The notes under the pieces are model-generated. The model saw only the letters and a list, made by a program, of their open reading frames with translations. It searched no databases and was not told where the DNA came from. From Hyaloraphidium curvatum SAG 235-1 (taxonomy: Eukaryota; Fungi; Monoblepharomycota): DNA of 64,000 nt. The stretch is from the NCBI GenBank assembly GCA_025558095.1, contig JAIVFI010000007.1, positions 558,001 through 622,000 on the forward strand, given 5' to 3'. Both the position numbers and the translations under genes were made by a program. Position 1 is the first letter of the stretch, and each line of letters starts with the position of its first letter. Positions 28,007 to 63,256 of the stretch are shown piece after piece.

Positions 28007-31000
28007 ATGCCGAGCCAATCCGGGCCCCCGGGGCCGACGCCGCCGTTGCTTGCGGGGCCGGCCGGCGCGGAGCCCGACGAGCCCGCGCGGGCGACCGCGG
28101 GGAGCGCGGGGCCGCAGTTAACCGCCCCGGCGCCTTCCCAGCCGGCCCCGTCACCGCTGGCGGCGAGCGAGCCCGAACCTGCCGAAGACGCCGACAGTGC
28201 AGCTGAGAGCGGCGACGCGGAGCTCGCGGTGCCGCCCGCCGCCGAGCCGGAAATGTCGGCCGTGAAAGTGGAGGCGACGCCGCTCTTCTGGCACGCCGCG
28301 ACGCACTCGGCGCCGCCCGCGCTCCCGCAAACTGCCGCTGCGGAGGCGCCGGCGCGCTCTTGGGACTCGCGGCAGATATCTGCGACGCACTCGGCGCCGC
28401 GCGTGGCGACCACGGAGGCGCCCGAGACGTATCTGCTGGCCTCGCCGCCCGGGACTTCTGCGCACCCAGAGACCTCGGCCACGGCTGTCCGCCGCCCGGC
28501 CACATCTCTGGTGGACTGGGTCACCTCCTTGCCGGCAAGCCCCGTCTCGGAGCCCCTGCCGCCGACCCAGACGGCTCTTCCGACGTGGACCACGGACGCC
28601 GCGTCGGCCGCCGAAACATGGACCACCGCCCCCTCCCGCCCCTCCCTGCCCCCGCCATCCTGGCTGTGGACTTCTTCTTACGCCCTGCCGACCCCCTCCG
28701 AGTGGAAGCACCGGCCGGACCACGACCCGCCGGAGGAGACCGAGACCTCGGAGCTCCCGACCCCCACGCCGACGCTGTCGGACTGGCCGTCGTCCACGAC
28801 GGAGCTGTTCACTACGTCGACCATTGGGCCGCCAGCACCGCCGTTTCCATATCCCGGAAGGTTGGTTGCGGCTCTCCTTTAGACTTCCACGTTGCTGATC
28901 CTTTTGCCGGCAGACCGGGAGGCGGCAACGACGACTACTTCTACCTGCAGGACTCGTCCGTCAAGGGCCTGTACTGGCAGATCGTCCTGGCCGCCATCTT
29001 CTGGCTGGCCATGATCGTCGTCTTCATGCTCGGCCGGCTCCTGGGCCGCTCGGGCCGGCGCATCTTCGCGACGCGGTGCGAGGTCATGCGCAAGGAGACG
29101 CCCGAGTTCTTCAAGAACCCGATCGAGTGCTTCAGGAAGGTGATACAGGTGACAGACAAGGAGATCGTGCAGAACGTCGGGTTGGACGCGATGGTGGGTC
29201 GCAACGGCGCGAGCGTTCGTTGGACGAGTGCTCACCCCAAGATGTGCGCGCCCACAGATGTTCCTGCGGTTCCTCCGCGTCTCCTTCTACACCATGGCCA
29301 TGATCGCCATGGTCGTCTTTCCCATCATCACGCCCATCAACTACTACGCCACCATCCCCGACGACGATCCCGGGCGCCCTCCCCCCTTCATCTCCGCCAT
29401 CCTCGGCCACGACGGCCTCCGCCACAACTCCACCGACCCCGGCCGCAACGAGACCGACCCGCCCGCCCCGCCGCCCCCGGGCAACTTCACGGACCCCATC
29501 TCGCGCTTCGCCTCCACGGGCCTGGTCCGCTTCACCATCGCCAACGTGCAGCCCGGCTCGCGCCTCCTCCTGGCCCACACGGTCTTCACCTACCTCGTCG
29601 CGGCCATCTTCTTCGGCTGGCTGTACGCGACCTACCGCGACTACGTGGCCGTGGAGAACGACTACATGCGGGAGGACTCGAAGCTCGGCGGCGCGCACCG
29701 CCGGCGCAACGAGCTCGTGCAGTTCCGCACGGTGATGGTGCGCGACATACCGCGCGGGCTGCGGACCGACGGCGCGCTGGAGTCGTACTTTGCCCGGCTG
29801 GGCCTGGGCGAGGTGCAGTACGCCGTCATGGACAGGCGCGTGGATCCGGACCTGGAGAGGATGATCAGGGAGCGGGAGATGGTGCTCGGCGGGCTGGAGA
29901 GGGCGTACGTCGAGTGGCACACGAGGGTGGAGGACCGGCGAAAGGGCAAAAAGTCCTTCTGGGAGGCGGTCCGCGAGGCGTGGGACGAGGCGTGGAGGCC
30001 GCACGCCGCATCGGCCAACGGCGCCGGGCACCCGGGTTCGCCGGCGGGGCAGCACCACCACGAGGGCTCCGATTCGGAGGGCAGCGCGTCGGACGAGGGG
30101 GAGAGCGCGCCGCTGACGGGCAAGTCCCGCCCCGACGCGCCCGAGGCGCTGCGGCCGCGGCACTTTGTCGGGCGGCGGTTCGGCTTCTTCGGCGGGCGCG
30201 AGGTCGACTCGATCGACTTTTACACGGGCCGCTTCGCCTTCCTCAACGCCGAGATCGAGCGCAAGCGCAAGCTCGCCCTCTCCCCCGAGTCGGTGCAGTA
30301 CAACTCGTCGGGCTTCGTCACCTTCCGCACCCAGCGGAGCGCCACCATCGCCAGCCAGGTGCTCCTGCGCTCCTCCACCAACCCCTTCACCATCACCACC
30401 AACCTCGCCCCGCACCCGCACGACGTGGTCTGGTCTGCGCTCAACCTGAGCATGCACCAGAAGGTCGTGCAGCAGTTCTGCGTGACCGTGCTTATCCTCG
30501 CCATCACCTTCTTCTGGGGTATCCCCATCGGCTTCATCTCCACCTTCACCTCGCTGTCGTCGCTCTCCAAAGTGCCCTTCCTCAAGCCCGTGCTGGACGA
30601 GATCCTCAAGATCGAGTGGCTCAACATCATCCTGCAGACCCTGCTGCCGCCGCTCCTGTTCCGCGTCTTTCTGGCGCTCGTGCCCACCATCATCCAGTAC
30701 ATCATCGACTTTGAGGGCATCGAGGCCCGCTCGTGGAGGGAGCTCGCCGTGTTCGACCGCTTCTACACCTTCCTCCTCTTCAACGTGCTCTTTGTCTTTG
30801 TGCTCTCCAACGCCGTCTACAACTTCATCGGCGGCCTCTTCGACAACCCCATCTCGGTCATCAAGCTCCTCGGCACCGTGCTGCCCAAGGGCGCCTCCTT
30901 CTTCACCAACTACGCCGTCTACACCTCGTCCTACTTTGCCTGGGAGCTGGGCCGCCCCATGGTCATCATGCTCTACGCCTGGCGCCGCCGCAACTGCCGC

Positions 31001-52537: not shown

Positions 52538-53120
52538 CGCGGAGGTTTGGCGAGGGATCGGAAGCCGCGGCGGCCGAACGGCCGAGTGTTCACCGCCAGC
52601 TCAGCCCGCGCCGCCGAGCCGAGAAAGCCTCCACAGCACCGGGGAAACGCGATCGCTGCGGCACGGCTTCCCGCCATTTCGCCGGGAAAGGCAGAAATTC
52701 CGCGTCGAAGACAGTCCCGACAGTTTTCCATCCTGAATGGATTGACGAGTTGGGCGGACGCGTTCCGATGCACGTACGTCGCAAACAAGGACCGCGAGTT
52801 TCTACTCTTCTGCCCACTTGAACCGCCGTCTCTCTTTGGATCTCATCCGGCATTGCTTTTTCATGGCGATTAGGGACTGGGTTCGTCTGAAGACCTTGAA
52901 TGGAAAGGAGACATGAGACCTCGGTGCGCGGTCGCGACGCGTTCAACTCTGCACGCGGTGTGCCGCGAATGAAATGTCGAGACTAAGGCGAAAAGAATGA
53001 ATTCAGTTGCAAGCAACTCCCTCTGTGCTAAACTGGTTCAAATCGACGAAGGAGCTTGTCGACCGGTGCCGTAACCGACGTAAAGCTGTTCTCGCCGTGG
53101 GCAAGCGCAACGCGCTGTTG

Positions 53121-54460
53121 CGACGGAGCTCCACGGACCACTGGAAGACGGCATCCACTTGTTCAGAACGCTCTGGGGCGGATTCTGCCTGGACGTATCC
53201 TGGCTAGTTCGTGGAAGAGCTTCAATGGACCTGACCCACAATTGAGGACCGAAGTTTCCATCTCCAGGCCCCATGACGCCTCGTGGACGCCCCTTAGCGC
53301 CCGTTGTCGATGATCACTATATTCATCTTCAAGTTCCATGGCTCGGAAGTCCCAGAATCGGCCTCTCGGAAGAGTTACTGGGCAAGGAATCTCCGCAAGG
53401 TGGATGGCTGGCGCGGGGCGAGAAAGCACAAAAGCAGGGCCCTGCGCGGAGCTCCATCGTCCCCTCTCATCACTGCATCGCGGCCGCCTGCAACTCGCGG
53501 ACTACTTCATCGCATAGCCACCTGCACAGCGGAGGACAGGTCAGCGCTCCGTCGGCTTCTCCCTCTCCGCAGCCCGACTTGACAGCTCTCTCCCCGCAGC
53601 CCTCCCCGCTCATCACTCATCACTCACCACGATGCCGGGCACCCGGGCCATGACTGCCGACAAGTACCTCACGATGGGCCCGCACGCCCGCCGCGCGGCC
53701 CGCGTCGCCCCGCACGTCGAGCGCAGCGGCACCGTCGGCGGGCACTCCAAGACCAATGCCGAGCCGCCGACGCCCATCGCGGTGCCCGACTTTTTCCGCC
53801 GTGACGGCGAGGTCGACTCGCAGAGGCGCACCGACCAAGCGGCGAAGAGCACCGTGCGCGACGAGCTGTGGGCAGCAATGGCCGGCGCCCTCAACGAGCA
53901 CCAGCTCGGGCAGCTCAAGCGGGTGCGCACGTGGACGTTTCCCCTCACGCTCATCGGCAAGCGCCGGGCCGCCGAGCCGGCTTTGGCGCTGCTGGATGCG
54001 CTGCGGGCGTCCAGGCCGCCGCCCAAGGTCTTTGCCTTTGAGGACGTCGTCGAGAGCCTGATAAAGGGCCTCGCCGTGCTCAAGCCGGCGCTCGAACGGT
54101 ACCTGGCCCACCGCAAGGACTTTGTCAATGCGTGGAATGGCCTCTCGGACTCGGCTTTGCGCTCATGCGCCCGGCACTTCCCCTTCGCCTGGCCCCGCGA
54201 CGTCGAGGAGCAGGTGCGCCGCTTCCTCACTGCGGTTGCGACGGCTATGTCGCCTTTCTTCACGGACATGGGCCGCAAGGCGGGCACGGACTGCTTCGCC
54301 GTGCGCGTGCTCAGGCACGAGCTCGCCAGGGACATTGTCCCCTGGTTGGCCGAGGTAGTCGAGATGAGGCTTGCACTCGATGCCCTGCCGGCCGCCCTTC
54401 ACTGATGGATTGGACGATCGACGAGTTGAATGCGAGATTATTGTGACTGTGTCATTGAAT
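53121..54460 (+). repeat. left arm of ~1.35 kb inverted repeat
   Basis: Reverse complement of 61440-62825; contains ~510 nt upstream sequence plus the 257-aa ORF. Confidence 0.93.
53632..54405 (+). CDS. orphan 257-aa protein, copy A
   Basis: Intronless ORF with intact frame in both repeat arms; 247/257 residues identical to copy B. Confidence 0.7.
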   Translation: MPGTRAMTADKYLTMGPHARRAARVAPHVERSGTVGGHSKTNAEPPTPIAVPDFFRRDGEVDSQRRTDQAAKSTVRDELWAAMAGALNEHQLGQLKRVRTWTFPLTLIGKRRAAEPALALLDALRASRPPPKVFAFEDVVESLIKGLAVLKPALERYLAHRKDFVNAWNGLSDSALRSCARHFPFAWPRDVEEQVRRFLTAVATAMSPFFTDMGRKAGTDCFAVRVLRHELARDIVPWLAEVVEMRLALDALPAALH

Positions 54461-54529
54461 TGAACAGAAAAACAAGCACGATACCATGCGCCAATAGTTC
54501 TCATTCCCAACCATGTGCCAAGCATAACA

Positions 54530-55837
54530 TCAAGCTCCCCGCACGTTGTCTAGGTCCTTGCCCTCCACGCCGACCTCCACGTACGGCGACCGGCATTTGG
54601 CGACCCAGATGCACCTCAGCTCGTCGATGAGGCGGTTCCAGTTGGACCCCCTCGTCCCGACCCAGGCGTCGCACTCGAGGGCCATGAGCAGCTGTCCGAG
54701 GTAGTAAAGCGTGTGCTCATCGCCCTTGTTCAGATGGCCCTGGCCGTTGAACCCGACCCGCGGGATGTCGGAGTGGTACGTCTCGAAGCCCGGGGGCAGG
54801 GTCGCCGCCTCCTTGATCACCTTGGGCTGCTCCGACGACACAAAGAGGGCCGGACGCAAGCCCAGCACGTTCTCCTTCTGCAGGCGCACCGCGGTCTCGG
54901 CAAAGACCGGGTACTCGACCAGCGTCATCTCGCTGCCCTTGTCCCCCAGGCGCACGTGCGCGCCGATGGTCCCCGGCGGGAGCGGGAACAGCGGTGAGGG
55001 CGGGAGCTTGCCGTGCGTCATGGTCATGTTGGGCCGCATCCGGATTTCGCGCAGCGCGTCGATCGTCCGGTCGTTGAAGCGCGCGATGAAAGCAGCGGAC
55101 TGGGCGCGCCACCAGTAGGTCAGCGAACTCCCCTGCATGTCCGGCCGCACCCGCTGGACCGCCTTGCGGGCAGCGGCGGGGATGCTCGGGTTCCAGCCCG
55201 TCATCCCGGCCTTGTCCTTCAGCGCGTCCAGCTTGGCCGTGTTGCCGGCCTTCATCCATGCGGTGCAGTTGGTCGGTTCCCGGAGGTAGCACAGCCAGTT
55301 CCGCGGCGTCCCGTCGCAGAACGCTCCCCTCGCCCACATGTGCCCATGCGCCGGCGAGAACACCATGATCGCGCCGGTCTCCACCGCGACGCCGAGCACC
55401 CTCCCCGTCTGGTGCCAGTCGCTGCCTATGCCGCTGACGATGTGCGCCACGACGAACGTCGCGCGGGCGCACTCCTCGGCGGGCCGGAACTGGTGCGCGT
55501 ACAGGAGCGCCTGCACCTCGCGGGTGGCGGGGGCGAGGCCGTCGGGATCCAGGGACGCGGGGGCGGAGTGCTGCATGCCCTCGCGCGAGTAGAGGAACTC
55601 GACGGAGCCGGGCGCGGGGCCGGAAGTCCGCGGCGGTGCTGCGCCGGAGAACGCCCCGCCGGTTTCTGTCCGCTCCGCGCCCGAGTTGGCGGGCGGAGCC
55701 ACATCGGCGCGAGAGGACGCAGTCCGCGGGTCTGTCCGCTCCGCGCCTGGCTTGCCGACTCCCGCCGCCGCAAACGCATACAGCAAAGCCAAGAGAGCAG
55801 CGACGGCCAAAACAAGGCTCCATGCCGGCCGTAGCAT
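54530..55837 (-). CDS. GT23-like (FUT8/NodZ) alpha-1,6-fucosyltransferase, type II membrane protein
   Basis: N-terminal TM LVLAVAALLALLYAFAAA; motif I IGAHVRLGDK; motif II LFVSSE; motif III WVGTRGSNWNRLIDELR. Confidence 0.8.
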   Translation of the reverse strand: MLRPAWSLVLAVAALLALLYAFAAAGVGKPGAERTDPRTASSRADVAPPANSGAERTETGGAFSGAAPPRTSGPAPGSVEFLYSREGMQHSAPASLDPDGLAPATREVQALLYAHQFRPAEECARATFVVAHIVSGIGSDWHQTGRVLGVAVETGAIMVFSPAHGHMWARGAFCDGTPRNWLCYLREPTNCTAWMKAGNTAKLDALKDKAGMTGWNPSIPAAARKAVQRVRPDMQGSSLTYWWRAQSAAFIARFNDRTIDALREIRMRPNMTMTHGKLPPSPLFPLPPGTIGAHVRLGDKGSEMTLVEYPVFAETAVRLQKENVLGLRPALFVSSEQPKVIKEAATLPPGFETYHSDIPRVGFNGQGHLNKGDEHTLYYLGQLLMALECDAWVGTRGSNWNRLIDELRCIWVAKCRSPYVEVGVEGKDLDNVRGA

Positions 55838-55883
55838 CGCGGTCGAGAGCGCCCGCGTGGGCGGTTGACGGCGCGTCGATCGC

Positions 55884-56779
55884 ATGACCCGATCGGACTT
55901 TCGCACACTGCTCCCTCGGATGGCCGCCAAGCAGGCCAGAGGGCGCAGCAGATTGCTGCTCCTTCTCCCTCTCCTCCTCCTCTTCCTACTCGCGGCCATT
56001 CGGGCGTTTACGACGCGCCGGCGACCCGGCGCACCCCCACGCGACCTGCCAGCGTTCCTCCGAGCCCTCGAGGAGGGCAGACCACAGAACGTGGTGTTCT
56101 ACGGGACCAGCCTGACCGACGGCCAACCTTGGGTCGCTGCCGTCGCGGAGGCGCTGGAGGAGCGGTATCCTGGCTTGCCGCGCGTTGAGAACGCGGCCAA
56201 GTCGGGGATGTGGTCCGGTTGGGGCCTGGAGAACTGGAAGTCGAGGGTTGCCGTACACTGTGGGCCGCTTCCGGTATTGAGGCGTGGAAGGGGCCTGATC
56301 GAACGCGTTCGGCAGCACCGGACGCGGTCTTCATCGAGTTTGCGATAAACGATGCATACCTCGCACTCAACACTTCGGTCCAGCTGGCGAGGTGGAATTT
56401 GGAGGACATGATTGCCCTGGCGTGGTCGGCTCAGAAGCCGGCAGAGGTCATCCTCATGACCATGAACCAGCCGATCGGCGAGGCGCTGCGCGACCGGCCG
56501 CGCGTCGAGGCTTACTACGACATGTACCGCCAAACAGCCAGGGACGATGGGTTGCTGCTCATTGACCACGAACGGAACTGGAAGCGGCTCTGGGGACGGG
56601 ATCGGGACGAGTGGAGGCGGCTCGTGCCCGACGGGCTGCACCCGGGCGAGGAGGGGCAGCGGAGGGTGGTGCTGCCCGAGATGCTGCGGCGGCTCGGGCT
56701 GGTGGACGGGCTGGACGAGTTGCCCGCGGCGCAGGGCGGATCTGCTCCCCTGGATGGCGAGCTTCGCGCCGTTGAGTGA
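55884..56779 (+). CDS. SGNH/GDSL hydrolase with N-terminal membrane anchor
   Basis: Block I VFYGTSLT, block II NAAKSG, block III IEFAIND, block V PDGLHP; one intron ~56247-56313. Confidence 0.85.
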
Positions 56780-56990
56780 TGCTGTGTCGATACTGAGGCC
56801 GGAAACCCCGAGACCGCCGATCAGCGCGGATCATATCCATGTTTGACCTCGTAGCTTAATTCTCTGATGTTCTGCTCTGTCGATTTCGGATCTTTAGGGC
56901 GTGTGGCGCCTGCGATGCGGGTGACAGCTGAGAGCCAATTCCTCGCCCATAGCCGCACGGTCCGGCAGTCCCGCCCGCAACCCGCGGCCG

Positions 56991-58894
56991 ATGGCAGCGC
57001 CGGCGGTGCCCGCGGCGTCCGCGGAGGGCGAGCCGGGCATTGCGGCGGCCGGCGCGGGCCAGGGCGGCGGCGGGGCGCCGGGGCCGCCGGGCGAGGCCGG
57101 GCACGCGGTGTCGGGGCAGCCCGCCCCGCGCCCCGCGCTGCCGCTGCCGCTGCTCGACCGCGTGCTCTGCTTCACGACGCTGCGCGAGTTCCCGCGGCTG
57201 CTGCGCGTCTCAAAGGCCGTCAACGAGCTCGCCGCGAAGCCGCACGTCGTCTGCGCCGTGTTCCGCAACTCGTTCCACCCGTGCGCCGCGCTGCTCAAGG
57301 CGCTCGGTGCGTTGTCCCGCGCTTGTTTTATTGCTGCCCGGCTCGCTGACGCGTCCGATCCCCTCTCCGGCCCGCCTGCTCTCCCCCGTCGCCCCTCTCA
57401 ACACTCTCAACGCACCCTCGCCGGATCTCTCCCGATCGCGCAACAGAGCTGTACCCGCGCTTCGACCTCGCGCTCGCCCAGTGCTTCTGCAAGTGGTACC
57501 TGCCGCTGCCGCGCTACGTGCTGCAGTGGCTGCGCCAGGACCGCCACGGCACGCCGCCGCCCGCCTCGGACACGGACTCGTCGCTGTCGTCGCCCACCGC
57601 CGGCATGTGCCGCGTGCCCAAGGACGCGTACATGTACCTCATGACGCAGGGCTACTGCCGCTACGTGCGCCCCGAGATGAACAGCTTCCTGGTGGACGAC
57701 GACGACGTGGACCACTACATCGCTCTGCTCTCGGACCTCGTCGAGGAGCCCGACCGCAACGCGCAGCGCGAGATCCTGGACGAGCTGTGGGAGCTCGTGG
57801 TCTCGTGCCAGCTGCCCGTCACCCTGCTGCCGCAGCGCATGGGCCCGCCCGAGGAGGCCGCCTCGCTCCTCCACATCCTGTGGGAGCGCAGCATGGCCCT
57901 GCGCAGCGACGCCTTCACCGCCCTCGCGCGCGCCGGATTCGAGTTTGCGCGCTTCAGCGACCCGGACCGCCTCCGCAGCTCGGACCCGTGGACGCGGGCC
58001 GTGGCGGACGACGTGTTCGTGCACCGCAACGATCCGGACAGGATGCACGCCCTGCGCCGCACCGGCCTGCCGTTCCTCGGCGTGCTCTCCTACTTCGGCA
58101 TTCGCGTCGCGCGCTCGCTGGTGATCAAACTGCTCGCGCTCGCCTTGCGCATGGACGAACGGGACGCCGTGATCGGGCTGGTCCGCTATGCCCGGCACAC
58201 CCGCGCGGTGCCGCCCGAGCAACCGTCAGCCTTTGTCCGCAGCGCGGTCCAGCAGGTGCAGACCCTGACGCCGCGGCACGGCACCATTCTAGCCTACATC
58301 GCCGACCACCACCTGCCCGTCTACGACGTCGCCACGATCGTCGTCAACGAGTGGCTGTACCAGGCAGGGGAGCAGAACGCCCGCTTGGTGGAGGACATCG
58401 CCAGGGCGGTGGAGATAGCCCACCCCGACGCGCCGCGGATCTGGGGCCTCTGCAACAGCCAGGCGCAGCTGACCCGCGAGGAGGTGCTCGAGCTCAGGGT
58501 GGCCGCGCAGGCCGAGGGGTGGGACCAGGAGAAGATGGACCGCGAAGTGGAGCGGTACCGCACCTCCCGGGCCCAGGAAACCTTCCATGGCTACACCACG
58601 CATCGCATCCAGGCGCGGTGCGCGGCGGTGGACCGCTGGGATACCATGGAGCGGCTCGCCCTCGCGTCGGGGAGCCTGGGCACGGAAGCCCTCCAGATGC
58701 TCGTGCAGCGGACGGTCAAGGCAAAGGAAAGGTACCGCGATGTCTGGGTGTCGCTGCTTGAGGAGCAGCTGCAGCCGATCGTGGCCTCGGCCGCCAGGGA
58801 GCTCGTGGGGCGGCAGGCGCCCCAGTTCGCCGAGGCGGACGACCACGACGTGCTGAGGTACCTGCTCGTGAGGACGGGGTTGAGGGTCGACTGA
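56991..58894 (+). CDS. hypothetical protein with F-box-like N-terminal motif (spliced)
   Basis: LPLPLLDRVLCF...LLRVSKAVNELA resembles an F-box; long GC3-biased ORF 57518-58894; introns between 57307 and 57447. Confidence 0.6.
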
Positions 58895-59289
58895 GCGGCC
58901 GCGCGGAGCGGACGGGGCGGCCCGCGGCGTCTATGCGGCGCCCCTTGGCAGGCGGTTTTGGACGAGTACCCAAGTTGGTTGAGCTGTCGTCGTTAGACAG
59001 AGAACGGACTCGTTCGCCGGAACTTTCTCCGGCCGGGTTCGGAATCGATACCTCGCGTGCCGCCTAGGCGGGCGTGGAGAAGCTACGTGTACAGATTTGG
59101 CGCCGTGATCCTTCCCAGATAGGTAGACTGCGTCGGCGATTGGCTCTGTTGCCCACAGACAAGGCATGATTGTAGTTCAACCAAAAAAGCAATGGTACAG
59201 TTGATCTTGCCGAGAAGCGGCTCTAGCAGTTCCAATGAGTGCAATCCAGACAGTCCAACGCGTGCTCCCGGGGGAGGCCTCTTCGGGCG

Positions 59290-60040
59290 CTACCAGCAGA
59301 CGATCTCCTTCTTCACCGGCCGCGACAAGGGCGGCAAGTCCTCGAGCATCTCCTTGAGCTCAGTTTCGAGAACAAAAGGTGCTCGCTCGAGGAACGACGC
59401 GGGCACAATCAGGTTGTCTGGGACGCGAGATCGGGGTCAGGCGAGATTCGAGGTCACGTGGGCGTCGCAGGGAACCCACAGTGTCGGATTCGGAGATTGA
59501 GAGCTGACGAGCCACGTAACAAACGCAGTAAGAAAAGGATAGCACGTTCGAACGGGTCGGAAAGTCACCTTCGGCTCGGCGGTCGAGGTCCTGCCTCCAC
59601 GGTCCCTCCAGGACGTCTGGGTACCGCTTCCTTTTGATCCACTCCTTCCGCATCCACGTTTTGAGTTCCAACGCGTCCTTCTCAATCGCCTGCCCCGACT
59701 GTATCCATTCGGGCGACACCCCGTTCCGTATCATGATCCGATTCAGGATCGCCTCGTGCGAGTCGACGAAGGGCGACGAAGGCAGGTCGATCGGCCTGCC
59801 GTGCCCCTCGAGCTCGTCGAACGCGCCCTGGCGCTGCGCGGTGCGGATCCTCATTTCCGCCATCGCGGCCAGCCCCGTGCTGGGCCCGACCGAGGCCATG
59901 GCCGGGTCCCACAGATGCGCGGGCGACGCGCGGGGCTGCGCCAGGATGCGCGCGACGTGGAGCTCCGCCTCGGTGGGCGGCGGCGCGGGAGGCGCGGGAG
60001 GTGGGGCGCGGCGCAAGAGGCGCAGGAGGCGCGTGGCCAT
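59290..60040 (-). CDS. DUF1992 (DNAJC28-like conserved domain) protein with mitochondrial-type presequence
   Basis: MATRLLRLLRR presequence; AEMRIRTAQRQGAFDELEGHGRPI...NRIMIRNGVSPEWI; later exon YNLIVP; two introns. Confidence 0.75.
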
Positions 60041-60185
60041 GGCGAAGCGGGGGGACGAGATAAGTGGGAGACGGATCTTTCGCGCCGCGCCGCGGCCTGG
60101 GACTCCGGCCCCCTGCATGGACCTCGATCGGATCGAACAAAAAGGAAAGCTTGGAGCAGATGTAGTGCTACGTGCGCAATGTCAA

Positions 60186-61145
60186 TCATGTGTACACCTT
60201 TTCCACGGAGCGCACTGGCCCTCGGCAGACGGGGCAGCTCCGAAGGCGCGCGTCCGCGGAGCAGGCTCCACAAAGCACCACGTGGTTGCAGGGCCGGATG
60301 AGGGTGTCCCGGGGCATATCCATGCATATCAGGCACGTTAGATCCGAGGAGTCCGGTGGCACCGGGACTTGTGTTGGGCTCGGAGACGCCTTCGATCTCG
60401 ACGGATCGATGTAGTAACCAAGAACGGTTGCTGCGACGACGACGGGCCCAAGCAACACAACCGCAACCACTGCAGAGAACTGAAAGAAGATGTCCTGCAG
60501 AGTTCCAACGACGGCCATGGCAGCCAGCAGGGCAATGCCAGACCGCATGAGCCTCCTGGCGGCCACGTCCTGGGCCAGTTCGCGGGCCTCCTCATCCAAC
60601 CTCAGCCGCGACCGTTCCCGTTCTTCCCATCTAGTCTTGGCCAGCAACGCCCGGAGCTCGGTGGCAGCCGCTTGCACGGCGTCGAGGCGGCGCAGTTCCG
60701 CCTCGGCGCGGTCGAGGTTCGCCTGTGCCGCGGCCACCTTGCGTTCCCACTCCTGCACGTCGGCCTGCGCTTGGACCAACTTTGCTGTTTTGGTGTCGAG
60801 CTTCGCGGCCTTGTCGCCCTTGACGGTGGCCACGAGGGAGGCGAAGCTCGCCCGCTGGAGGTCGTGCACCTTGTCCTGCCTCCGCGCGAGCCAATCAACC
60901 GCGGCCCGGTGCCCAATCTGGGCACTCGCAAGGCCCTCTGCAAGCCCGGCGGCGATGCGGCGCTGTTCGGGCAGCCGGTCGAGGTCACCGCGCAGCGCCG
61001 CCAGCCGCGCCTCGAGCGCTGCGGCGGAGCCGGGATCCGCCCCCGACGGCCGCCCGCCCGCCGGGTTCCCCATTGACGGATCATCTGTCGCAAGCGGCGT
61101 GTACGGCGGCGGCTCTTCCTCGTACGGCGGCGCTGCCTCGTCCAT
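60186..61145 (-). CDS. membrane-anchored C3HC4 RING E3 ligase-like protein
   Basis: PPxY-like motifs, coiled coil, two TM segments, C-terminal CLICMD...PCNHVVLCGAC...CPVCR. Confidence 0.85.
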   Translation of the reverse strand: MDEAAPPYEEEPPPYTPLATDDPSMGNPAGGRPSGADPGSAAALEARLAALRGDLDRLPEQRRIAAGLAEGLASAQIGHRAAVDWLARRQDKVHDLQRASFASLVATVKGDKAAKLDTKTAKLVQAQADVQEWERKVAAAQANLDRAEAELRRLDAVQAAATELRALLAKTRWEERERSRLRLDEEARELAQDVAARRLMRSGIALLAAMAVVGTLQDIFFQFSAVVAVVLLGPVVVAATVLGYYIDPSRSKASPSPTQVPVPPDSSDLTCLICMDMPRDTLIRPCNHVVLCGACSADARLRSCPVCRGPVRSVEKVYT

Positions 61146-61439
61146 GACGGAGTTGCGGGCAAGGACCCTTTCCACGCGTCCCAAAACGCTGACGTCCTCG
61201 CGAGTCCCACACCCTAACGCTAGAGTGCGACGATGCGAAACATGCCATGTGCGAGGAAAGGCACGCTCGTTGCATGGCTGTGCAAATATACCTGCGTAAT
61301 GCTACGGCGCAGGAACGGAACACGCACCCGTTGCTGCGACTACGAGCACGCTTCTGTATCCCAGCACATCGCTATCCGAAATCCGCATTCGGAACGCCGA
61401 TCACGTTTACGGTCGAGCACTTTGGTTGGTATCTAGTGT

Positions 61440-62825
61440 ACTCAATCACGACACAGTCATAAATCACCTCGCAGCTCCAACTCGTCTATCAAACAATCCT
61501 CTAGTCCATCCAACGCGCAGCAATCCACATCATGCAGCTCCTCAGTGGAGGGCGACGGGCAGGGCTTCGAGCGCAAGCCTCATCTCGACCACCTCGGCCA
61601 GCCAGGGGACAATGTCCCTGGCCAGCGCGTGCCTGAGCACGCGCACGGCGAAGCAGTCCGTGCCCGCCTTGCGGCCCACGTCCGTGAAGAAAGGCGACAT
61701 GGCCGTCGCAACCGCGGCGAGGAAGCGGCGCACCTGCTCCTCGACGTCGCGCGGCCAGGCGAACGGGAAGTGGCGGGCGCATGAGCGCAAAGCCGAGTCC
61801 GAGAGGCCATTCCACGCATTGACAAAGTCCTTGCGGTGGGCCAGGTACCGTTCGAGCGCCGGCTTGAGCACGGCGAGGCCTTTTGTCAGGCTCTCGACGA
61901 CGTCGTCGAAGGCAAAGACCTTGGGCGGCGGCCTGCACGCCCGCAGCGCATCCAGCAGCGCCAAAGCCGGCTCGGCGACGCGGCGCTTGCCGATGAGCGT
62001 GAGGGGAAACGTCCACGTGCGCACCCGCTTGAGCTGCCCGAGCTGGTGCTCGTTGAGGGCGCCGGCCATTGCTGCCCACAGCTCGTCGCGCACGGTGCTC
62101 TTCGCCGCTTGGTCGGTGCGCCTCTGCGAGTCGACCTCGCCGTCGCGGCGGAAAAAGTCGGGCACGGCGATGGGCGTCGGCGGCTCGGCATTGGTCTTGG
62201 AGTGCCCGCCGACGGTGCCGCTGCGCTCGACGTGCGGGGCGACGCAGGCCGCGCGGCGGGCGTGCGGGCCCATCGTGAGGTACTTGTCGGCAGTCATGGC
62301 GCGGGTGCCCGGCATCGTGATGAGTGATGAGTGATGAGCGGGGAGGGCTGCGGGGAGGGAGCTGTCAGGTCCGGGCGTGAGGAAGGAGAAGCCGACGGAG
62401 CGCTGACCTGTCCTCCGCTGTGCAGGTGGCTATGCGATGAAGCGTTGCCGCGCTTCGAGGCGGCCACGATGCAGTGATGAGAGGTGGCGATGGAGTTCTG
62501 CGCTGGGCCCTGATTTGCGCTTTCTCGCCCCGCGCCAGCCATCCACCTTGCGGAGATTCCTTGCCTAGTAACTCTTCCGTGAGGCCGATTCTGGGACTTC
62601 CGAGCCATGGAACTTGAAGATGAATATAGTGATCATCGACAACGGGCGCTAAGGGGCGTCCACGAGGCGTCATGGGGCCTGGAGATGGAAACTTCGGTCC
62701 TCAATTGTGGGTCAGGTCCATTGAAGCTCTTCCACGAACTAGCCAGGATACATCCAGGCAGAATCCGTCCCAGAACGTTCTAAACAAGTGGATGCCGTCT
62801 TCCAGCTGTCCGTGGAGCTCCGTCG
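61440..62825 (-). repeat. right arm of ~1.35 kb inverted repeat
   Basis: Reverse complement of 53121-54460. Confidence 0.93.
61542..62315 (-). CDS. orphan 257-aa protein, copy B
   Basis: Ten amino-acid differences from copy A, no indels or stops. Confidence 0.7.
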   Translation of the reverse strand: MPGTRAMTADKYLTMGPHARRAACVAPHVERSGTVGGHSKTNAEPPTPIAVPDFFRRDGEVDSQRRTDQAAKSTVRDELWAAMAGALNEHQLGQLKRVRTWTFPLTLIGKRRVAEPALALLDALRACRPPPKVFAFDDVVESLTKGLAVLKPALERYLAHRKDFVNAWNGLSDSALRSCARHFPFAWPRDVEEQVRRFLAAVATAMSPFFTDVGRKAGTDCFAVRVLRHALARDIVPWLAEVVEMRLALEALPVALH

Positions 62826-63256
62826 ACGGAGCCCCGTAACGTATTCCAGTTCAAGCACGAGTGGACTTACCCGCGTCCAGCCCACGAGGGCGTATTTCTT
62901 CTTTCCAATCGGCTACAGAGAGACGATCAAAAATGGATTCTAGTTCATTTGATTGGCTTTATCTCCAGATTCCATCAGCAGGCAAGGTGCTCGACGCGTT
63001 CCGCAGACCATTCGAAAAACGACCCGCAATGACACTCTTGACGTGATTCCGGGCCCTCCAACAGCAGCTCCATTCAGAAAGCATGCTGTAGCGTGGTGGA
63101 GCGAGATCCGCTTCACCCTGACGTTCATTGGACGTCTTCGTGCGACGAAATCGGTGATGTTTGGGACGCGAGATTCAATCAACCACGCGTCGACGTCTCC
63201 CAACGGGCCGACGTGTCGTTTGAAGAACAGAAGCAGAGCAGCGAGCGAACCGTGCG

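Follow-up and report, generated by a model that had tools for sequence, protein, structure and literature searches.

Inverted copies of an orphan gene enclose five genes in the fungus Hyaloraphidium curvatum: a probable local inverted duplication

The inverted repeat

We analysed a 64,000-nucleotide (nt) stretch of the Hyaloraphidium curvatum SAG 235-1 genome (assembly GCA_025558095.1, contig JAIVFI010000007.1, positions 558,001 to 622,000), which is called the window here; its contig is referred to as contig 7 (C7). The window holds two arms of an inverted repeat, and each arm carries an intact gene for the same orphan protein of 257 amino acids (aa). Five other genes lie between the arms. 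Positions are those of the window unless a contig is named. The repeat and its genes are made up as follows.

53121-54464, plus strand: left arm of the inverted repeat, with 511 nt of upstream DNA, the coding sequence (CDS) of the orphan and a diverged 3' tail of about 58 nt
61442-62825, minus strand: right arm of the inverted repeat, found by repeat search, self-BLAST and local alignment
53632-54405, plus strand: left copy of the 257-aa orphan gene, an intact open reading frame (ORF)
61542-62315, minus strand: right copy of the 257-aa orphan gene, an intact ORF, with 247 of 257 aa identical to the left copy

The two arms are reverse complements of each other and share approximately 95% identity up to the stop codon. 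A repeat search of the window resolved three collinear inverted blocks, pairing 53121-53432 with 62514-62825 (312 nt, 97%), 53431-53489 with 62458-62516 (59 nt, 88%) and 53505-54418 with 61529-62442 (914 nt, 95%). In self-BLAST these blocks merge into one match of 53121-54409 with 62825-61539, which is 95.3% identical over 1293 nt. The arm pair is the sole repeat of at least 80 nt that self-BLAST finds within the window. There are 65 differences between the aligned arms as far as the stop codon, and the indels and 3' tails are not the same either.

The inner ends of the arms depend on how the alignment is made. MAFFT and the repeat search place the apparent end of homology approximately 13 nt beyond the stop codon. 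The right arm has about 41 additional nt (61500-61541) directly after its stop codon, and local alignment extends past this indel to a tail in which 54407-54464 matches 61442-61500 at approximately 78-80% identity. This tail match is strong for its length (z = 12.9 against shuffled sequences; BLAST E 1e-4). A sequence-only reading of the stretch had described inverted repeats with inner limits near 54460 and 61440, about 510 nt of upstream DNA in each arm, and intact inward-pointing ORFs of 257 aa with 247 identical residues. Repeat search and self-BLAST recovered the same repeats, the upstream DNA measures 511 nt in each arm, and ORF calling and alignment returned the same pair of genes. The inner limits are also right, because the homology resumes after the indel.

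The locus lies in the middle of its contig, at 611-621 kb of 890,790 bp and away from the contig ends, and both arms are embedded between unique sequences. We noted one marginal collinear inverted match outside the arms, between 52898-52936 and 62872-62910 (75%, E 0.05). It may be the decayed remnant of a formerly longer duplication.

The orphan gene

Both orphan ORFs point inwards, and the copies differ at 27 nt and 10 aa. The GC content at third codon positions (GC3) is approximately 0.9 across the ORF, the same as in the adjacent genes. The upstream region 53121-53500 shows no codon periodicity, and its GC content is lower than that of the ORF. The genome is high in GC, and the antisense frame with the same wobble positions is open in the arms too. 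Codon tables for sense and antisense were therefore trained on six genes of the window that are called with confidence. The codon-usage log-likelihood ratio of sense over antisense was 97.5 bits for the left copy and 99.3 bits for the right copy. This amounts to 0.38 bit per codon, and known genes in a leave-one-out test gave 0.22-0.45 bit per codon. Codon usage thus rules out the antisense ORFs at 53613-54335 and 61426-62334, which are high-GC artefacts.

Third codon positions hold 18 of the 27 differences between the copies. The synonymous divergence (dS) is 0.092 and the non-synonymous divergence (dN) is 0.018, giving a dN/dS of approximately 0.19 (synonymous versus non-synonymous, Fisher p = 3e-5). 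Thus, both copies are real genes, and purifying selection has acted on them since their separation.

The protein reached no Pfam family, even at E = 10. A word-indexed search of 5.8 billion proteins returned no match, and neither did HMMER (phmmer) over all 1.84 billion cluster representatives at E ≤0.001. The Atlas offered no usable neighbour. A six-frame protein search through the H. curvatum genome (E up to 10) found no paralogue besides the two copies. No similarity to the Centroid family (YNL018C/YNL034W type) was seen either, at E ≤0.001 in the 1.84 billion representatives or in the word search. Judged by these searches, the 257-aa protein is a true orphan that is restricted to its lineage.

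A single-sequence AlphaFold model of the orphan is of low confidence (pLDDT 48.5), with approximately 110 disordered N-terminal residues and a helical C-terminal half. Among PDB sequences, the only matches were to designer pentatricopeptide repeat (PPR) proteins, and these were sums of alignments of approximately 5 bits between residues 92-157 and every repeat unit. We rejected the assignment of the orphan as a PPR protein: no single stretch was significant against the designer PPRs, and Pfam gave no PPR hit at E up to 10. At most, residues 92-157 carry a weak hint of one and a half pentatricopeptide-like helical hairpins.

Divergence between the arms

The differences between the arms are unevenly spread. 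From the outer end inwards, in coordinates of the left arm, the divergence is as follows.

53121-53427: 2.6%, including 171 nt without a difference
53428-53504: 26%
53505-53562: 0%
53563-53589: 33%
53590-53631: 2.4%
first 339 nt of the CDS: 1.8%
remainder of the CDS: 4.8%
3' tail: approximately 20%
53195-53365, no strand: the non-coding block of 171 nt that is identical in both arms, with flanking differences at 53194 and 53366

The heterogeneity is significant, in a comparison of two sequences without an outgroup in which constraint and conversion are inseparable. When the non-coding differences were permuted 20000 times, no permutation produced an identical run of 171 nt. The arms also share an identical tract of 164 nt. 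Within the CDS, the 5' third is less diverged than the rest (p = 0.009), and this part encodes the predicted disordered region, normally the faster-evolving kind.

The 171-nt block shows no codon periodicity and no excess of RNA structure (folding z-scores of +1.4 on both strands), and the conserved upstream block has no Rfam match at E ≤1. The 171-nt block may be an element of the promoter or of the 5' untranslated region, or it may be a recent conversion tract. As a whole, the patchwork suggests an old duplication that has been partly homogenised by gene conversion. We infer from it that the neutral divergence between the copies is nearer 20-30%.

The outer junctions

One further feature marks the outer end of the right arm.

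62817-62832, no strand: perfect 16-bp palindrome GCTCCGTC/GACGGAGC, centred 1 nt away from where the right arm ends on its outer side

Read as the reverse complement, the 7-8 nt immediately outside the right arm repeat the final bases of the arm itself. The window contains only four palindromes with a half-length of at least 8. By our own arithmetic, the chance that one of them coincides with the breakpoint to within approximately 1 nt is about 2e-4. The palindrome points to a trace of hairpin or fold-back repair, and it suggests that, of the two arms, the right one is derived and was captured at a break. At the flank of the left arm there is a small hairpin-like sequence, GCAAC-GCGCT-GTTGC (53107-53121), and no palindrome.

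Short fold-back (templated) inverted duplications at repaired breaks are known in yeast, and they need no transposase (PMC11724301). The palindrome at 62817-62832 resembles them in that it amounts to a brief inverted duplicate of the bases beside a junction. The yeast insertions are scars of 5-34 bp at an induced break (PMC11724301), whereas the palindrome here would be a scar at the end of a captured copy of 1.3 kb, and the link between the two is one that we infer.

The enclosed genes

Coding periodicity and ORFs indicate that five genes account for the whole interior of approximately 7 kb.

54530-55837, minus strand: gene 1, FUT8/GT23-like glycosyltransferase whose N-terminus has a membrane anchor; 435 aa in the called product (100% identical to P0001)
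55884-56779, plus strand: gene 2, SGNH/GDSL hydrolase in two ORF pieces, head-to-head with gene 1 (PF13472, E 3e-15)
56991-58894, plus strand: gene 3, protein with a weak F-box-like N-terminus, in two overlapping ORF pieces (PF00646, E 0.18)
59360-60118, minus strand: gene 4, DnaJC28-type protein (DUF1992; DJC28_CD; PF09350, E 7e-18)
60186-61184, minus strand: gene 5, membrane-spanning coiled-coil protein, RING finger at the C-terminus (PF13920, E 5e-13)

These are largely the genes that the sequence-only reading had named. Pfam supports the SGNH, DUF1992 and RING assignments directly. The GT23-like protein itself reached no Pfam family, and its assignment comes only through its homologues, many of which carry PF19745 (FUT8-like). 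The F-box-like assignment is the weakest of the five, at the E-value given above.

There are 107 homologues of the GT23-like protein, and the closest named ones are from chytrid fungi. Two paralogues in the genome, at C17:50820-52394 and C9:800221-801222, are 45-49% identical to the copy in the window; the C17 paralogue is read through one TGA, which is probably an intron. The named paralogue, P0002, is a protein that NCBI assigns to H. curvatum; contig 17 encodes it at 100% identity, and the assembly is therefore that of H. curvatum, a zoosporic fungus of the monoblepharid lineage. The contigs with homologues of this gene (an environmental chytrid-like contig and Spizellomyces) have quite different neighbours, in relatives that are distant and for a gene that has paralogues. 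The two ORF pieces of the SGNH hydrolase gene are probably separated by an intron. The called start codons of the GT23-like and SGNH genes (55837-55884) are only about 46 nt apart, which means either that the bidirectional promoter is very compact or that a start has been called wrongly.

The GC3 of the enclosed genes is host-like and matches that of the neighbouring genes; in the F-box-like gene it reaches 0.99. This gene has only one match in the genome. The gene for the RING protein has paralogues for the RING domain only, and its non-RING portion is single in the genome.

We also surveyed the first 200 kb of contig 7 by self-BLAST as a sample of local duplicates. Besides tandem arrays, it contains three inverted and four direct dispersed duplicate pairs. 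Local duplicates thus occur about once per 30 kb in the sample, and the two orientations are about equally common. Three structures can be described individually. A tandem array at C7:18414-22041 has about ten units of approximately 372 bp with 95-97% identity. At C7:64497-80609 the duplicates are nested, with an inverted pair (64497-64810 and 80282-80609, 87%) enclosing a direct pair (67464-69018 and 77383-78924, 82%). An inverted pair at C7:13271-14862 and 29178-30086 is internally repetitive, and its members lie approximately 15 kb apart and are 78-91% identical.

Origin of the locus

We consider it likely that this part of the nuclear genome of an early-diverging fungus shows an unremarkable inverted duplication, local in extent, in which a genuine orphan gene was copied through break repair, the copies were partly homogenised and five resident genes are enclosed. 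The orphan gene, approximately 0.5 kb of upstream DNA and a short 3' tail would have been copied once, in reverse, approximately 8 kb away. The five resident genes would thereby have come to lie between two inward-facing copies. Repair of a DNA break through a hairpin or fold-back intermediate would have made the copy and left the 16-bp palindrome at the right outer junction. The duplication would be older than an overall divergence of approximately 5% implies, because conversion and selection (on the CDS and the promoter) would hold most of the arm at 0-5%, with the unconverted patches and the 3' tail at 20-33%. A simple local inverted duplication was the third of the readings that had been offered from the sequence alone. 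It is favoured by the count of two arm copies, the mosaic divergence, the palindrome at the breakpoint, the frequency of local duplicates in both orientations and the ordinary, resident nature of the enclosed genes, of which those tested are single-copy.

An inverted duplication of this kind could have consequences for the interior. The identical tracts of 171 and 164 nt make occasional homologous recombination between the arms possible, and such recombination could occasionally invert the 7-kb interior. Rare inversion, accidental or on an evolutionary timescale, is possible as well. Upstream DNA and CDS are present in both arms, so no switch-like effect is predicted: the two near-identical genes would trade only their 3' flanks upon inversion, and every promoter would stay with its gene. 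Inversion would then be a by-product and not a switch.

Four points weigh against a break-repair duplication as described. The evidence comes from one assembly of the region, and both orientations may exist. The palindrome might have been present already in an ancestral right copy and may be no repair scar; in that case it would have acted as a fragile breakpoint. The identity of the derived arm comes solely from the palindrome. The conservation of the outer non-coding 307 nt (2.6% divergence, with 171 nt identical) could reflect function instead of conversion.

Among the other explanations, a recurrently inverting flip/flop segment survives best, and we regard it as unlikely with some chance of being right. 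The 7-kb interior would re-invert on population or evolutionary timescales, and the same recombination would keep the arms alike. This overlaps with a local inverted duplication, and the sole difference is that the inversion really happens and recurs. Saccharomyces offers a precedent, with duplicated genes that evolve fast forming an inverted repeat (PMC9731477). Gene-bearing arms around ordinary genes fit such a segment, and the mosaic identity, with its identical tracts of 171 and 164 nt, is consistent with conversion from arm to arm. The inverted repeats of Saccharomyces and Ogataea are almost identical, whereas the arms here are approximately 95% alike. Mismatch-repair anti-recombination suppresses crossover between diverged repeats. 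An identity of approximately 95% should suppress it strongly, and an inversion has no evident functional consequence.

A broader form of this idea is unlikely as well. The segment would be a naturally flipping one, the Monoblepharidomycete counterpart of the flip/flop region on Saccharomyces chromosome XIV, with the inverted pair of a fast-evolving orphan gene driving recurrent inversion of the five resident genes, and it would be one case of a genome-wide tendency to build such cassettes through hairpin or fold-back repair of breaks.

It is very unlikely that the repeat is an artefact of assembly, such as an allelic copy that was placed in reverse. Zoosporic fungi can be diploid, which counts in its favour. 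The 65 aligned differences are biased to third codon positions and come with different indels and 3' tails, and both arms stand between unique sequences in the middle of the contig. Nor would an artefact place a sharp junction at a palindrome or leave two genes intact and under constraint.

We consider a programmed and regulated inversion switch, of the kind seen at the locus for mating type (MAT) in methylotrophic yeasts, to be highly improbable. An invertible cassette was among the readings offered from the sequence alone, and in this programmed form the evidence does not favour it. It has in its favour only the geometry of long inverted repeats around a block of several genes. Neither the arm nor the cargo ORFs yield a Pfam hit to an HMG, alpha-box, homeodomain or recombinase domain. 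The arms are 95.3% identical overall and contain patches with 26-33% divergence, and the locus lies mid-contig, at 611-621 kb of a contig of 891 kb. No change in expression is predicted, as inversion would not part either arm gene from its upstream DNA.

The least credible explanation is a cargo-carrying mobile element bounded by terminal inverted repeats of 1.3 kb, to which we give almost no weight: it is true that long terminal inverted repeats surround unrelated genes and that the orphan in the arms could in principle be an unrecognised mobilisation protein, but the arm occurs in exactly two copies in the 31.9-Mb genome of 55 contigs (DNA search; likewise for the protein in six frames at E up to 10), the outer flanks GCGCTGTTG (left) and ACGGAGCCCC (right) do not match and form no target-site duplication, and Pfam finds no transposase, integrase or recombinase domain in the arm or in the main interior ORFs. 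The five genes fill the interior and leave no space for a transposase. Of the cargo, the F-box-like and membrane-spanning RING genes that were tested are single-copy, and GC3 is host-like. Unlike the proteins of mobile elements, the orphan has no relative in the searched genomes and metagenomes. The sequence-only reading had itself seen no transposase motif and no target-site duplication, as we find in the main ORFs and flanks. Its suggestion of a novel cargo-mobilising element is contradicted by these results, and the genome-wide search for other arm pairs with different cargo returned none.

Comparison with known systems

The MAT switching of Ogataea polymorpha and Komagataella is alike in that inverted repeats on the kilobase scale flank a block of several genes that can be inverted by homologous recombination (PMC5720833). 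That system has MAT genes, identical inverted repeats, one end under centromeric or telomeric repression and induction by starvation (PMC5720833). Identical repeats, MAT genes and a silencing centromere beside one end, as in Ogataea, are not seen at the Hyaloraphidium locus.

Inverted repeats on animal sex chromosomes (FLNA-EMD and the Y palindromes) have gene-bearing arms around a unique spacer, evolve in concert and occasionally invert the spacer by non-allelic homologous recombination. Their arms measure from 10 kb to megabases and are more than 99% identical. Compared with these, the Hyaloraphidium locus is small and more diverged, and its host is a fungus with a compact genome.

The closest analogue is the 24-kb flip/flop region on Saccharomyces chromosome XIV, where the inverted repeat consists of the gene pairs YNL018C/YNL034W (Centroid) and YNL019C/YNL033W (PMC9731477). 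This region inverts recurrently on evolutionary timescales and not on laboratory timescales (PMC9731477). In both cases the inverted repeat is formed by duplicated, fast-evolving genes of obscure function, unrelated resident genes fill the block that the arms enclose, and neither a recombinase nor a transposase takes part. Recombination homogenises the arms in Saccharomyces and may do so in Hyaloraphidium. The arms in Saccharomyces are 4 kb long and almost identical, whereas those in Hyaloraphidium are 1.3 kb long and approximately 95% identical. For Saccharomyces, the two orientations are on record both within species and between them, and its genes are sporulation-specific and centromere-linked; the Hyaloraphidium locus is known from the orientation in one assembly, and its arm protein is similar to nothing that was searched.

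Gene-bearing, partly homogenised inverted segmental duplications are already well known from yeast to mammals, and a single locus matters little. The present one documents a real, selectively maintained pair of orphan genes in a little-studied fungal lineage, and the palindrome at its breakpoint is a concrete clue to how such duplicates arise. The locus also suggests that Hyaloraphidium would be a good place to measure the rates at which inverted-repeat structures form and invert. If both orientations do exist, recombination would be suppressed over the five enclosed genes, as it is in the yeast flip/flop region.

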